Below, in pieces: positions 41,070-48,200 of a DNA stretch of 64,000 nucleotides. The translations under genes were made by a program, and so were the position numbers. Source of the DNA: Hyphochytrium catenoides (lineage: Eukaryota; Protista; Hyphochytriomycota). The stretch is taken from positions 1-64,000 of the forward strand of contig FLMG01002775.1 of assembly GCA_900088475.1 (NCBI GenBank). Reading direction: 5' to 3'. Each line of letters begins with the position of its first letter. Position 1 is the first letter of the stretch. The notes below the pieces were generated by a model. The model had not been told where the DNA came from and did not search any database. It was given only the letters and a program-made list of their open reading frames with translations.

Positions 41070-43052
41070 ATGGCGGAAGTCGACACTAGTGTAAGCTTTT
41101 TGGTGCAAATTGAGTATGAGAGCGTTTCGATCGTTCAGGATCTGATTCTTCTGACTTCAATGCAGGTGTTCAATGACGGGCTCCTTGAGCAGAACTTGGA
41201 GGCTCTTGACCCTGCGACACTTACACCCCTTACGCCAGAAGTAATTTCAAGACAGGTGCGTTGAGGTTGCTTGGGTTGGGTGTGCAGTTGACTGATATGT
41301 TGATGGATGTATATCCTTCTTGCAGGCCACCATCAATATTGGTACCATCGGCCATGTGGCCCACGGAAAGTCCACCGTAGTCAAAGCTATCTCTGGCGTT
41401 CAGACTGTCAGATTTAAGAATGAACTCGAAAGAAACATCACAATCAAGCTTGGTTATGCAAATGCGAAGATCTACCAGGCCGAAGGAGCAGACGGCCTAG
41501 GCTCATATAAAGCTAAGGGAAGCACGCAGTCAGATAGGTATGTGCTACGATAGAGGATACCTTACATGTCTGATGTATTGATCATCCTGACATGTACTTA
41601 GATTTGAGGAGGATGATAAGACCTGGGTTTTGAAGCGCCATGTCTCGTTTGTGGATTGTCCTGGCCACGATATTCTGATGGCTACCATGTTGAACGGTGC
41701 TGCGGTCATGGACGCTGCACTTTTGCTCATTGCGGGCAATGAAACCTGCCCTCAACCGCAGACATCAGAGCATTTAGCAGCTATTGAGATTATGAGACTG
41801 AAGAACATTATCATCTTACAGAACAAAGTTGACCTTATCAAAGAAGAAGCTGCACTCGCGCAGCATGAGCAGATCAAGAAGTTTGTGGCTGGCACAGTTG
41901 GTAAGGTTGAGATAAATGGCGAAGATGTTATTAACGCGTCCCTGCTTCGCGCTTCGTAGTCCTTAGCGCAGCTCCTATTTGGTTCTTTTACTCTATGCTG
42001 ATATATAGAGCTGCCTCCTCGATTCAATTGTCTGCCCGTTCCTACTTTTTGTTCCGGGCTTGGCCTCTGCGCTTCGGGGTTGATTCGATTACGTCCTCTA
42101 CTTTGTATGTGTTGGTGCGCGGCACTCGTCAATTGCAGTCTAACACTCTGCCACAGCCGATAATGCACCGATTATCCCTATTTCCGCGGTGCTCAAGTAT
42201 AATATTGATGTTGTCTGCGAGTACATCGTGAGAAACATCCCTATCCCTCCAAGAGACTTCACATCTATCCCCAGACTTATCGTTATCCGGTCCTTTGACG
42301 TCAACAAGCCCGGAGAGGACGTGGAGAACCTCAAGGGAGGTGTAGCTGGTGGTTCCATTCTGCAAGGTGTACTACGCGTTGGCGATGAGATAGAAGTGCG
42401 GCCTGGTATCTTTGGCAAGGACGCGTCGGGCAAGATTATGTGTGTGCCAATTTTCTCCAGAATCATGTCTCTACAAGCCGAAAGGAATAGCCTCAAATAC
42501 GCAGTCCCAGGAGGTCTTATAGGTGCTGGTACAAAGATTGATCCAACCTTGACCAGATCCGACAGGTAGACTCGGAAACCCTATCTTTTTGTGAGGCTGC
42601 GTATTAACGACATCTTTCTTAGACTTGTGGGGCAGGTGCTGGGCGTAAAGGGGAGCCTTCCTGATGTATTCATCGAGCTGGAAATCTCGTTCTACCTGCT
42701 CAAGCGGTTGTTGGGCGTCAAGACTCAGGAGGGTAGCAAAGCCAGCAAGGTTCAGAAGCTAACCAAGGCTGAGGTTCTCATGGTGAACATCGGTTCAACG
42801 GCCACAGGAGGTACGGGTCTTGCCGTGTGCTTTTTCTCTACGTATCATCTACTAATAAGGCTATTATGCATCTATGCAGGGAAAGTCCTTGCCGTCAAGC
42901 AGGATCTGGCGAAGATCCAACTAACAGTCCCAGTGTGCACACAAGAGGGGGAGAAGATTGCGCTCAGTCGGAGAGTTGAAAAGCACTGGCGTCTGATTGG
43001 ATGGGGAGAGATTCGTCGTGGTACTAAGATTGATATTACTGAAAGCAGTTAG
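41070..43052 (+). CDS. EIF2S3: Eukaryotic translation initiation factor 2 gamma subunit
   Basis: [92 protein letters not shown]. Confidence 0.98.
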
Positions 43053-44686
43053 TGGCTAACGTGGAAAAGAAACTATCGGAAGGGTTTCCCATTCTAGACA
43101 GACAGACAATATCTATTCTAATGCTGTCATCTGCTCCAATCACACTCCAGCTATCCTTACCTTGTTCCTATCAGTAACTCCAAATCTCACTCCATTTTGC
43201 TATTGACATGAGCAAGTGCAAGAGGTAGACAGCGTTTATCAACTGCCAACTTCCTTCTTGTGCAAGCCGTCTCCAAGTCCTACAATGCCAAACCACTAAT
43301 AGGCATAGCAACAACCATCCCGCGCTAGCACTAGTCTCCAATCTAGTAAAAATCAACTTCTCACCCATAACCCCAGACCCATTCCTTGCTATGTTCATTT
43401 CCTTCCAAGCGCTACTAGACCTTTCATCAATCCGACAAGACCGCCATATCGTAACATGGCTATCCTAGCCCAGCAAGATATATTCCTCTGCGGTACTAAC
43501 TATGGGCCAACAAGTATGGCTATTCTTCCTCATCCCCTCACTACCACAGCAACCCCTCATCCGATTCCTCATCAAGGAACTGAAACTCACTCGCACTACT
43601 ACCTTGGACTCATTCACATTCTTCACTTGCTTCATCCATGACAGCGTATGCCCTCCACAACCTTACCAGACGACAACAGCAAAGCGCTAAGCAAAGCATC
43701 GGGAAAGTAGCTCTTTTGCCACCGCAGGCCACGCTCGCATAGGCTTCAAGCTCTATCCATATGGTGCCGCCATGGAGCTTGGTGACAGCTCGATCGTCAG
43801 CGGGGTTGCCAATGTGACAGGAGCTCGTCCCATTCAGCGTACTGGAGTTTACAACTTGTGTCCGACTCAAACTTGCTGCAGGAACGGACCTGGAAGTAAC
43901 AAAGACAGAAGGCAAAGGCACAGAGAGCCGCAACGCCGACACCACCAACCCACTTTCCTTCTAGTCAGAAAATGGCTAAAGGTATATTTGACTCTCTAAT
44001 ATGTAAAAGCATCACGCTATTATCACATTCTAACTACTCAAACGCATCCTCAGCTGCCGCTATCAAGAGATGCACGAACACTCAAAAAATAAATACTCAC
44101 TGAGACGCCGTCTTTCCGTACAGCCCGCTCGGAAGTGCGTTCTTCGGAGCGACAGATCACGTCTCAAATAGGCTCAATAGACCTGCAAACAGGCTTCCCT
44201 ATCAACACACAAGGTGCGTAGCAAAGGTAAGCACTGAAGCTGTTTGTTAGTCAAGAACCTTGAAGTTCGGACCTAATCATGCCCGGTAAAGAGTTGCACC
44301 TCCACGATGCCCAATGCTTTCACAGCCAGGGCAATCGTTTGTGCGAGGTCTTCACTGCTCGGGAGCTATCGCCACCCGCTTGACTTCCAGCGGGATCCGG
44401 CAGCCTTTGTGGTGCAGTGCCTCGAAAGCTCCGCGAGCTACCGCACGAGCCATGAAAGAACCGCTAGGTACTCCAAGATTCAGGTGTGAAATATCACCTC
44501 TTAAGTGTCAGTGCCTTCAATGTCGCCTTGTCTCTTAGTCTAAAGTGGCGGTGGTCACAAGCACAATGCATGGCGTTAAGATCTCTATGACCACGAGCTA
44601 TGCGTCATGAACAATGCGAGACAAAGAAACAGACAGGAGAACCTGATTCCTGATGAAGACGAGATCCTGCTTGAGACAGGGCATAC

Positions 44687-45289
44687 TCACCACGACTGAT
44701 CCAAAGCCGGTGGGATGAAAGATCCCGTCGGATCTGCAGTCGGATAGTCATTGACGAGAATTTTCTCGACAGCTGCATCATCTGTCTTGGCGTTGTGCTT
44801 CGCATACAGATGCATTAGGAATGATGTGGTGTTGTACGGCGCCCCTGGTCTCGTAAGAATGAGGTCAGCCTTTCTCTTTCGCCGTATATTTCGATGAAGC
44901 TGCCTCTTTTGCTTGTTCGAATCTGGTAAAATTGGTACTGGCTTGATTATGGGTGTCGACGAGTCTGGCTTAGCCAAATTAAATTCCAAGTTCTCTCCTT
45001 CTTTTTTCCAAAATGATCTCTTCTCACTCCTTTTGGGCCGGATGCCGTTGGATGGGAAGTCAAAAACCTTGTTTCGGGAGTAGTGTACCACTCGCCTATG
45101 GCCTCGTGGAGCAAGGCTTCTTGAATCACGACTCATTTCGTCAAGCATCGAGGTAGGTAAGGCTTGTGGTGAGATAGGTCTTCCACTTGTATGCTTCTGT
45201 GAAACAGGGGAACTGTAGAGGTTCAGGCAACTATCGGGTTGTCTTGGACGCTTCAACGAGAGTGACGAAGGCGGCTCTACAGCAATCAT
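44687..45289 (-). CDS. HEXIM-like protein (basic region + PYNT motif); may continue in a downstream exon
   Basis: 200-aa ORF containing KQKRQLHRNIRRKRK followed by GAPYNTTSFLM (44842-44813), versus HEXIM APYNTTQFLM. The ORF stop overlaps a consensus GTGAGT donor at ~44690. Confidence 0.6.
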   Translation of the reverse strand: MIAVEPPSSLSLKRPRQPDSCLNLYSSPVSQKHTSGRPISPQALPTSMLDEMSRDSRSLAPRGHRRVVHYSRNKVFDFPSNGIRPKRSEKRSFWKKEGENLEFNLAKPDSSTPIIKPVPILPDSNKQKRQLHRNIRRKRKADLILTRPGAPYNTTSFLMHLYAKHNAKTDDAAVEKILVNDYPTADPTGSFIPPALDQSW

Positions 45290-48200
45290 TGACGGTGTTG
45301 GGAAGAAGTTCTATCGAAAGGTATGGCCACTTACAACACTTCTTAGATAAAGAAATGTCTAAGCTCGCAGTGGCGTGTCTGAGGGCTGTCTTCACAGACC
45401 AATTGAGAGCTATTGCGACTCGTGTTCTCCGCTCTGGCAGTCGCTAGAACATTCAAAACTGGCGCGAGCGGCTGTTGACCTTTGTGACGCTAATGATGAA
45501 AATTCTTCTATGGACGAGTGAGGCGGCGGCGGCAGAAGGGAAACAGAGACCAACGCTCTTAGACTATTACTACTTTCCTCTGTAGTGTGCAAGATTGAGT
45601 GTTAGCGCCTCTCTCGTCTCTTGGTTATTATTTTTTTAGAGTTTGTCCATAGTTATTAGCAGGAGAATGATCTCATTGTGTTTATTAGAGGTAGTGAGTC
45701 TTTTTCTGTTCTCTCTCTTTTCTGCCATCCTCTCTTCCTTTCCCCCTTGAATCAGTTCTCTGACTCTTCCTCATCAGTGTCTCCCTTACGCATATTAGCT
45801 CCCTTATTCTTCCTTGACAATAGCCAACATAGTATTCGTCTCCTGGCTATCTCTTTCTTTCCTCACACTCTCTAAAGGTGAAGGTTCCTCTATCTCTTTT
45901 CCCTTCCCTCCAATTTCCGTTCCCTCTTACTCCATCCTTCCAATTACCAGACGGCTTCCTGAAATAATCCGCCTTTGGGACCTCTGACTAACATCTCCGC
46001 ATCAGAAGTTCTCGATAATATACCGCTATGGCACTGGCCCCTCTTCCGCCCTTTCTCCTCCTGAACTTCATCATAGCTGGAAGCTGCTTTGTAAGTGTCT
46101 GTGACGATAGAGACTATTAGGAACTAGCCTGATTTGACTATGTAGGTTCCATATTCCTATGGTCCCTATCCGAGATGAACTGACGCCTCCACACCTCCTT
46201 GTGGCATCATAGTAATACAGCTCTACCTGGTGCAGGTGGGAATCAAGAAAGAACTGTAGTAGTAGGCCCACCCCTTGACTATCCTATTGATGTAGATTTC
46301 CAATAGTGATCTTATCTCGTTGGCTGTAAAAATAGGGAGAATATTCTGACCTGTCTCTACTCCAACCGCCCACCCATCCCAGCATCTTATGATCACTTTG
46401 ACCGCTTGAGGAGCGAAGCCGTCCCACCCATCGGTTTTCATGGAAGGGGATGGGTGTGTGGTAACTGCCAGTGCCCCGCCTTGGGGCTGTTGGAATGAAG
46501 GCGAGGATGATGGGAAGGTGGATAGGCAGAAGGAAAGGGGTTCGCCAGCTTTTCCAGAGTTCGAGTGGGAAAGAGGCACGATCTGCTCATGGAGATCCTA
46601 TGTTCAGAGCGAGACAGAGAACGAAGAGATGGGGCAGGCAAGAGAAACTCCATACAGTGGTTGAGTATGGGCAGAAGTGGTTGCTACTGTAGAAGGAGCC
46701 GCCATTCATCTGCACCCAAAGACAATAGAAACAGCACCGAGACAACACAGGCAGGAAATGCCGATGAAAAAGAGAGAAAAGGCAAGAAGGTTCATACAGA
46801 CATCATCAGCTCGCGTTGAGATGTACCTGTAGTTTCTCTTTTAGAAGAGAGACTTCAAGATGAGCGAGGACAGAGGACAGAGGACACAGGCACAGCAAAG
46901 CCAAGATAGAACTATGACATGACGATGAAGAAAGGATAATGAACAAGAGCAGCAAAAAAGAGAGAGCAGGGTGGTGGCTCCTCTTTTTTATGGTATAACT
47001 ACAACGTGTACCCACTGTCTTCCTTTCTGTCCCCCTCTTGTTGCAAATCAACGTCGTCCATCTCCATCTTCTGGAGGACAGGCCAACAATCAGCCAGTTG
47101 TCGCGATGATGATGAAGGGATGATGTGTGGGGAGGTAGGGAGGAAGACGAAGTTGGACGACGGAACTGTGTGTTTCATCTTGTATGGGAGCCATAATGTA
47201 GCTCATAATGTAGTACGAGTAGTAGGGCGCTGCCTGTGGCAGGTCTTACCCTCGCTCACCTTCTTGAGATATCATATGCCTTTATTAGGACCTCGTTTAG
47301 CCGAGCATTAAGTTCCTGAACGACGGTAAAGGTTGTCAATTGGTGGAGTGCAACAAGGAAGGAGAGTGTGCTGCTGCGGTTGAGAGGGTTGAAAAGTATG
47401 TAGCTGCTGGGGAAGCACAGTTTAGACTACTGAAGAAGCTAGATTTCAACCATTAGTAGTTGTTTTTTTTGCATCGCTACTCCTCCCATTTCTCTTCATG
47501 CTCTACTGCTGCCCCACCAGTCTAATCATGACGCTCACCACCTCCTACTCTTCCTCATCTCCCCTTAATCGGAGTACCAGAGTATCTTATCTAAAATTTA
47601 TTATCGAGAGCAACGTTTCCGAGCTGCTTTTTTACTGCTAGCTGTTTGTTTTACTCCTAAGAAAAAAAAGAGATCATCATGCATGAGAGATTGTCCTGCT
47701 GGGCCTCGCGATAGATAGCAGCACCACAAGGAGGAGGAGGAAGAAGGAAGATTGGCGGGAAGGAAGCGGTTAATAAGGAATTGATGAGGAAGCCACAAAA
47801 ACCAAGAAGGATTTATAATAAAGTTTTGCACTGGAAAGCAGTTTTTCATTGACGATGGTAGCAATGATTATAAAGGAGTGACTACTAGTAGACTACTGTT
47901 TAGAAAGGAAGATGTGAAAAATGTACAACGGAGAACAAGAACAAGAGCAGCGAAACTACTAGTAGGCCAGAAAAGAGAAGAAGAGGAAGAAAGCAGTTCC
48001 TCCATCAGCCGCCGACCACCAAGAAGGGCGGCGGCCGGGGAGGATGTTGGGCAGGAAGCGAGAGCTGTGGGGACACTGAGGAGGACGCGGGGCGATCATC
48101 TTCAGAAAGAAGGATGATGATGATGACAGTGATGCTGATGATTGTTGCGTGCTTTGCTGCTTTGACCCAGAGTGGATGCCGATATGACCGTATCATGAAT

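Follow-up and report, generated by a model that had tools for sequence, protein, structure and literature searches.

Locus and coding potential

The candidate HEXIM-like open reading frame (ORF) is located at 44687..45289 on the minus strand of the window, by which we mean the whole 64-kb stretch of Hyphochytrium catenoides DNA that was analyzed. It consists of an ATG start, 200 codons, and a TGA stop. Translation of 44687-45289 (minus strand) yielded the 200-residue product with Lys/Arg-rich tracts and the sequence APYNTTSFLM, as described in the initial annotation. An eIF2-gamma-like gene with a GTP_EFTU_D2 match (exons at 42189-43052, plus strand) runs convergently to the ORF, and two introns of 55-70 nt are visible in it. 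These introns and the gene content clearly mark the DNA of the window as non-animal. The Rfam search of the 64-kb window found nothing.

Coding potential was assessed with a codon-usage model trained on eight ORFs of the window, comprising five with Pfam matches, one adjacent eIF2-gamma exon, and two taken from gene notes. The frame of the HEXIM-like ORF gave a log-likelihood of +0.12 per codon, which falls among the values of the training exons (+0.10 to +0.31 per codon), and all of the other five frames were negative. Residues 86-200 carried a strong signal and residues 1-85 a weak one. Because of this weak support in the proximal segment, the true start of the protein is uncertain, with M1, M48, and M52 as the candidates. 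An exact-sequence look-up showed that the ORF and two neighboring ORFs are absent from the protein collection, so that the proteins of this genome are not in that collection.

The DNA depth over the ORF, obtained from the contigs of a public DNA run of the same organism, was equal to the depth of the flanks, and the ORF is therefore single-copy. The locus was present in none of the RNA runs; those under the species label were tiny and empty, and only a DNA run gave coverage. The contigs revealed four allelic differences inside the ORF (S88I, K95K, L101S, and S110P). Three of these are non-synonymous, and all are found between residues 88 and 110. The two alleles were identical over 44439-44961, which covers the helix, the motif, and the tail described below. 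This identity says little about selection, because the block also takes in the 3' flank. Around the ORF, the allelic differences were clustered in short blocks (43226-43283, 44962-45027, and 45921-46226), and half-depth contigs were observed in the same DNA run; this pattern is consistent with a heterozygous diploid genome. The genome paper of Hyphochytrium catenoides describes a diploid organism with 3.64 introns per gene (PMC5795050). The heterozygosity and the short exons of the window match such a diploid, intron-rich pseudofungus.

The stop codon of the ORF is overlapped by GTGAGT, which resembles a splice donor. A hidden downstream exon, which might have supplied the missing coiled coil, was considered and rejected on three grounds. 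The neighboring eIF2-gamma gene has introns of 55-70 nt with weak donors (GTAGAC and GTACGG), the window shows no enrichment of GTGAGT (27 observed vs 31 expected), and each candidate acceptor within 150 nt leads to a stop within approximately 20 codons. Inspection of the three frames downstream of the ORF showed no coding-like frame. The HEXIM-like protein thus most likely ends at the TGA. Farther along the minus strand, an 85-nt segment (44100-44184) has a good acceptor (tttgcag) on one side and a GTGAGT donor on the other, with stops in all three frames. A UTR exon, a non-coding transcript, or chance could account for it.

Architecture of the predicted protein

The first basic tract, RPKRSEKRSFWKK (residues 84-96, 45002-45040, minus strand), contains Lys or Arg at seven of its 13 positions, has a net charge of +6, and ends in W-K. 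It may correspond to the basic region of HEXIM, which ends in ...KKRHW-K. The Pfam alignment does not include this tract. The three amino acid replacements between the alleles (S88I, L101S, and S110P) fall in this tract or just past it. The second basic tract, KQKRQLHRNIRRKRK (residues 126-140, minus strand; net charge +9), is situated inside a predicted alpha-helix at residues 124-144 (44858..44920, minus strand), which aligns to positions ~17-32 of the Pfam HEXIM profile. The PYNT block, APYNTTSFLM (residues 150-159, 44813..44842, minus strand), forms the core of the matches to Pfam and to the metagenomic protein P0001 described below. The order of the basic tracts and the motif was given correctly in the initial annotation; its wording that the motif follows directly was slightly loose, as a spacer of nine residues (ADLILTRPG) separates the second basic tract from the motif. 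The C-terminal tail (residues 160-200, 44690..44812, minus strand) is mildly acidic, with six D/E residues and a net charge of -3, and it has neither the FSETYE block nor a coiled coil.

The AlphaFold2 (AF2) single-sequence model was mostly disordered, with a mean pLDDT of 57. The helix at residues 124-144 was the sole confident element (block pLDDT 81-93), and it is predicted to end six residues ahead of P151. A long C-terminal helix was absent from the model. This result, along with the lack of an open downstream frame, bears out the earlier remark that the coiled coil is not visible in this ORF.

A protein-language-model search of the ESM Atlas with residues 120-200 (44690-44930) returned low scores only (0.5-0.64). 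Among the named clusters, those of arginine-rich RNA-binding peptides (phage lambda N antiterminator and cucumovirus 2b) came nearest, at a score of ~0.5. We regard the possible resemblance of the basic helix to RNA-binding arginine-rich motifs as a weak hint.

Statistical support for the similarity to HEXIM

The sequences APYNTTSFLM of the ORF and APYNTTQFLM of HEXIM1 are identical at nine of the ten positions. This identity, which had been proposed initially, was verified against the human and mouse HEXIM1/2 sequences, all of which read VAPYNTTQFLM in the Pfam alignments accompanying the work of Chivu et al. (bioRxiv 10.1101/2023.02.19.529146). Over residues 151-159 of the ORF, PYNTTSFLM shares eight of nine residues with 202-PYNTTQFLM-210 of HEXIM1, including P151, T154, and F157. 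Chivu et al. marked Pro202, Thr205, the Phe of the motif, and Tyr271 as crucial residues (bioRxiv 10.1101/2023.02.19.529146). Three of these four are present in the ORF (Pro202 = P151, Thr205 = T154, and Phe = F157), and the Tyr271 block is missing.

The expected count of APYNTTxFLM, computed from the six-frame residue frequencies of the window, was 4.6e-8 per window, 5e-5 per 70-Mb genome, and 0.011 over 250,000 windows. With the latter value, the match is not a by-product of scanning many windows.

HEXIM (PF15313) was the only Pfam family matched at E values up to 10. For the whole ORF, the match had E = 1.3e-4 and 22.7 bits, and placed residues 128-169 on profile positions 17-57 of 142. Restricting the query to residues 114-200 gave E = 4.6e-5 and 24.1 bits, with the profile covered to position 58, and the search with residues 1-113 gave no match. 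Both scores are under the gathering cut-off of 29, and approximately 41 of the 142 profile positions were matched. Profile positions 1-16 (wkpYsklsleekkeld) did not align to the ORF, which offers only F-W-K-K-E-G-E at residues 93-99 for this part.

When 1.84 billion representative proteins were searched exhaustively with phmmer, a single match was returned, P0001, with E = 3.2e-5. P0001 is a eukaryote protein from an ENA metagenome (L001:5001-6230), and it matched Pfam HEXIM strongly, with 102 bits in five stretches. When an HMM was built from the five repeats of P0001 alone and applied to the 1,419 six-frame segments of the window, the ORF was the sole significant match (E = 2.7e-6), the next best having an E value of 0.35. 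The search with P0001 for HEXIM reference sequences recovered the close relatives of P0001 only.

Several other searches were negative. No orthologue of the ORF was found among 5.8e9 or 1.84e9 proteins or in the JGI metagenome contigs. Word-indexed homologue searches with the whole ORF and with residues 125-200 gave no match, a method that is blind to a 12-residue motif. Searches of PDB sequences with the ORF and with a motif profile returned nothing relevant, and no solved chain matched the PYNT-region query. Scans of metagenome contigs by motif alignment and with the full ORF gave pattern matches, none of which was confirmed by tblastn.

The resemblance of the ORF to HEXIM is genuine and has statistical backing in the Pfam match, the exhaustive phmmer match, and the predicted helix and motif architecture. 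These data are best read as evidence of a HEXIM-like protein from a non-animal organism, as suggested by the initial annotation. Placement in the HEXIM family proper is not established, because the Pfam score stays under the gathering cut-off and the C-terminal module, with its Tyr271 block and coiled coil, is lacking; the protein is thus not a full HEXIM.

Interpretation and alternative explanations

On the basis of the sequence, the structural model, and the analogy with HEXIM1, we favor with moderate confidence the explanation that the ORF is a real single-exon gene. Its product would be a short (at most 200 residues), largely disordered nuclear protein homologous to the central module of HEXIM, in which the PYNT block most likely blocks a CDK9-family kinase. 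In brief, the ORF most likely encodes a real, minimal HEXIM-like protein.

The restriction of the similarity to approximately 40 residues raises the question of convergence. According to this alternative, the gene is real and codes for an unrelated basic nuclear protein. The PYNT-like block of this protein would be a short linear motif that arose by convergence or was repurposed, and the protein would have no part in CDK9-type regulation. The Pfam score under the gathering cut-off and the absence of the remainder of HEXIM are in line with such a scenario, as is the view of Chivu et al., who favor a holozoan origin and call the other sequences only 'HEXIM-like' (bioRxiv 10.1101/2023.02.19.529146). 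On the other hand, P-x-A-P-Y-N-T-T-x-F-L-M is identical at 10 of 12 positions, and the predicted basic helix is found at the same spacing. The RPxAPxNTT context also recurs in many protist lineages, for which descent is an easier explanation than repeated convergence. We consider convergence unlikely.

The missing C-terminal module could also be read as a sign of decay, in which case the ORF would be what is left of a HEXIM-like gene after the loss of its C-terminal half, and would be free of selection or unexpressed. The predominance of non-synonymous changes (three of four), the lack of a homologue in the searches of proteins and metagenome contigs, and the absence of the locus from the RNA runs agree with a relic. 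However, the ORF is intact across 200 codons and has a codon usage like that of known exons, and the half that carries the motif (44439-44961) is the same in both alleles. Comparable lengths (190-230 residues) are also seen in several of the published HEXIM-like proteins of protists, and a relic appears improbable to us. A chance ORF in non-coding DNA with a coincidental motif is highly improbable: by our estimate, 64 kb would contain about 0.4 stop-free runs of 200 codons by chance, and the searches for orthologues revealed no conservation, but the motif is expected very rarely in a single window as well as over the whole scan, the independent profile tests were significant, and the codon usage favors this frame alone.

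For the minimal HEXIM-like protein, the following mechanism can be proposed. The HEXIM-homologous central module would comprise the basic region, the basic helix, the six-residue linker, and PYNTTxFLM. The PYNT block would dock on a CDK9-family transcription kinase and block it, as in HEXIM1. The arginine/lysine-rich helix may act as a nucleic-acid-binding element, a nuclear-localization element, or both, and the binding of RNA by this helix could make the kinase inhibition RNA-dependent. Because the HEXIM coiled coil is missing, we propose that the protein would act as a monomer without a cyclin-binding clamp, and the inhibition may therefore be weaker or rely on other contacts. The analysis itself establishes the sequence, the motif, the statistical link to HEXIM, the helix as a prediction, and a codon usage like that of coding DNA; expression of the ORF protein, its kinase target, the inhibition, and any RNA gating are what we infer. 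The 'P-TEFb control system' with a partner RNA, as envisaged in the initial annotation, would be a pure extrapolation from the animal system.

A farther-reaching version of this mechanism is conceivable, and we rate it as doubtful. The Pseudofungi, i.e., the hyphochytrid/oomycete branch of the stramenopiles, might have a working minimal HEXIM, where a monomeric protein lacking the coiled coil would inhibit a CDK9/cyclin T/K-type kinase with its PYNT motif, and a 7SK-like RNA bound by the adjacent arginine-rich helix would control this inhibition. If this were true, RNA-gated control of elongation would predate the split of the major eukaryotic supergroups, and would not date from the holozoan ancestor.

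HEXIM/7SK control of P-TEFb is usually seen as an animal, or at most a holozoan, invention tied to promoter-proximal pausing. The earlier statement that the HEXIM/7SK system is described essentially from animals is at odds with Chivu et al., who list choanoflagellate and ichthyosporean sequences as well as many protist ones (bioRxiv 10.1101/2023.02.19.529146). HEXIM-like sequences outside animals are already on record, and the ORF is not a first. It is most likely a further member of the known, uncharacterized protist HEXIM-like set, from a lineage that was not sampled in that survey. If it can be cultured, Hyphochytrium catenoides would be a tractable organism in which to ask if the PYNT module suffices to inhibit a CDK9-type kinase and if RNA gating is ancient. 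If the protein inhibits no CDK9-type kinase, a different conserved partner has to exist for RPxAPxNTTxF, a motif that is widespread.

Comparison with known HEXIM and HEXIM-like proteins

Animal HEXIM1 and HEXIM2 are 7SK-dependent inhibitors of P-TEFb (CDK9-cyclin T). A 7SK RNA is not known from the host lineage of the ORF. In HEXIM1, NMR located the helix alphaL at residues 171-194, seven residues before P202, in a region that is otherwise disordered (PMC12901311). The PYNT motif binds and inactivates CDK9; the basic and acidic regions keep it masked, and the binding of 7SK RNA to the basic region ends this masking (PMC12901311). The ORF shares with the animal proteins the order of a basic tract, a helix that is predicted in the ORF, a short linker, and PYNTTxFLM. 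The spacing between the helix and the motif is likewise the same, at six residues in the ORF (predicted) and seven in HEXIM1, and both the ORF protein (by prediction) and animal HEXIM are largely disordered.

The differences concern the regions on both sides of this module as well as its charge. The ORF does not contain the WKPYxKLxxEEK block of HEXIM, and only F-W-K-K recalls ...RHWKPY. Its predicted helix is far more basic (net +9) than that of HEXIM, and the acidity after the motif is much weaker than in the acidic region of HEXIM1. The FSETYE/Tyr271 block is missing, with the stop 41 residues past the motif, as is the C-terminal coiled coil, which mediates dimerization and cyclin T binding in HEXIM.

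Chivu et al. found HEXIM orthologues in choanoflagellates and ichthyosporeans, and a patchy distribution of HEXIM-like sequences in many protists, stramenopiles included (bioRxiv 10.1101/2023.02.19.529146). They favor an origin of true HEXIM in an ancestor shared by animals and the unicellular lineages closest to them, and regard CDK9-type kinases and an ancestral cyclin T/K as ancient in eukaryotes (bioRxiv 10.1101/2023.02.19.529146). Their HEXIM-like set covers colponemids, cryptophytes, Goniomonas, Picozoa, Malawimonas, Trimastix, Spironema, dinoflagellates, and Amoebozoa; the stramenopiles in it are Haloplacidia, Halocafeteria, MAST-3C/3F, Platysulcus, Dinobryon, and Chromulina (bioRxiv 10.1101/2023.02.19.529146). 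No oomycete or Hyphochytrium sequence is present in the HEXIM files of Chivu et al., and the published HEXIM-like set includes no plant sequence. Apart from the work of Chivu et al., a full-text literature search returned no paper that connects HEXIM to protists, stramenopiles, or oomycetes.

The protist HEXIM-like proteins have in common a basic stretch followed by RP-x-AP-[RHY]-NTT-[QS]-[FY] (bioRxiv 10.1101/2023.02.19.529146). When the short blocks were compared by eye, the ORF sequence ...RRKRKADLILTRPGAPYNTTSF conformed to the pattern of a basic stretch and then RP-x-AP-x-NTT-[QS]-[FY], and ...TRPGAPYNTTSF, also compared by eye, fitted the block with [RHY] at the variable position. The protist proteins are approximately 190-375 residues long, several of them 190-230, and the ORF is likewise short at 200 residues. 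It carries the animal-type Tyr (APYNTT), unlike most members of the protist set, which have Arg or His (APRNTT or APHNTT). Such a Tyr is unusual for a non-holozoan. Several members of the set retain a W[KR]PYSxLS block, whereas the ORF is devoid of an N-terminal W[KR]PYSxLSxxE block. The ORF is known in its genomic context, in contrast to much of the published protist set, which consists of transcriptome fragments.

P0001 is the nearest sequence relative of the ORF, and R-P-G-A-P-x-N-T-T-x-F-x-M is common to both. P0001 has an N-terminal basic tract followed by W-NYYK, and five tandem RPGAPPNTTTFIMDQH...DDWSYEE modules; its relatives are P0006-P0010. Its host contig is rich in microsatellites and comes from a eukaryote unrelated to the host of the ORF. 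The two differ in the number of motifs, with five in tandem in P0001 and a single one in the ORF. A HEXIM with multiplied PYNT motifs, such as P0001, could in principle engage several kinases at once.
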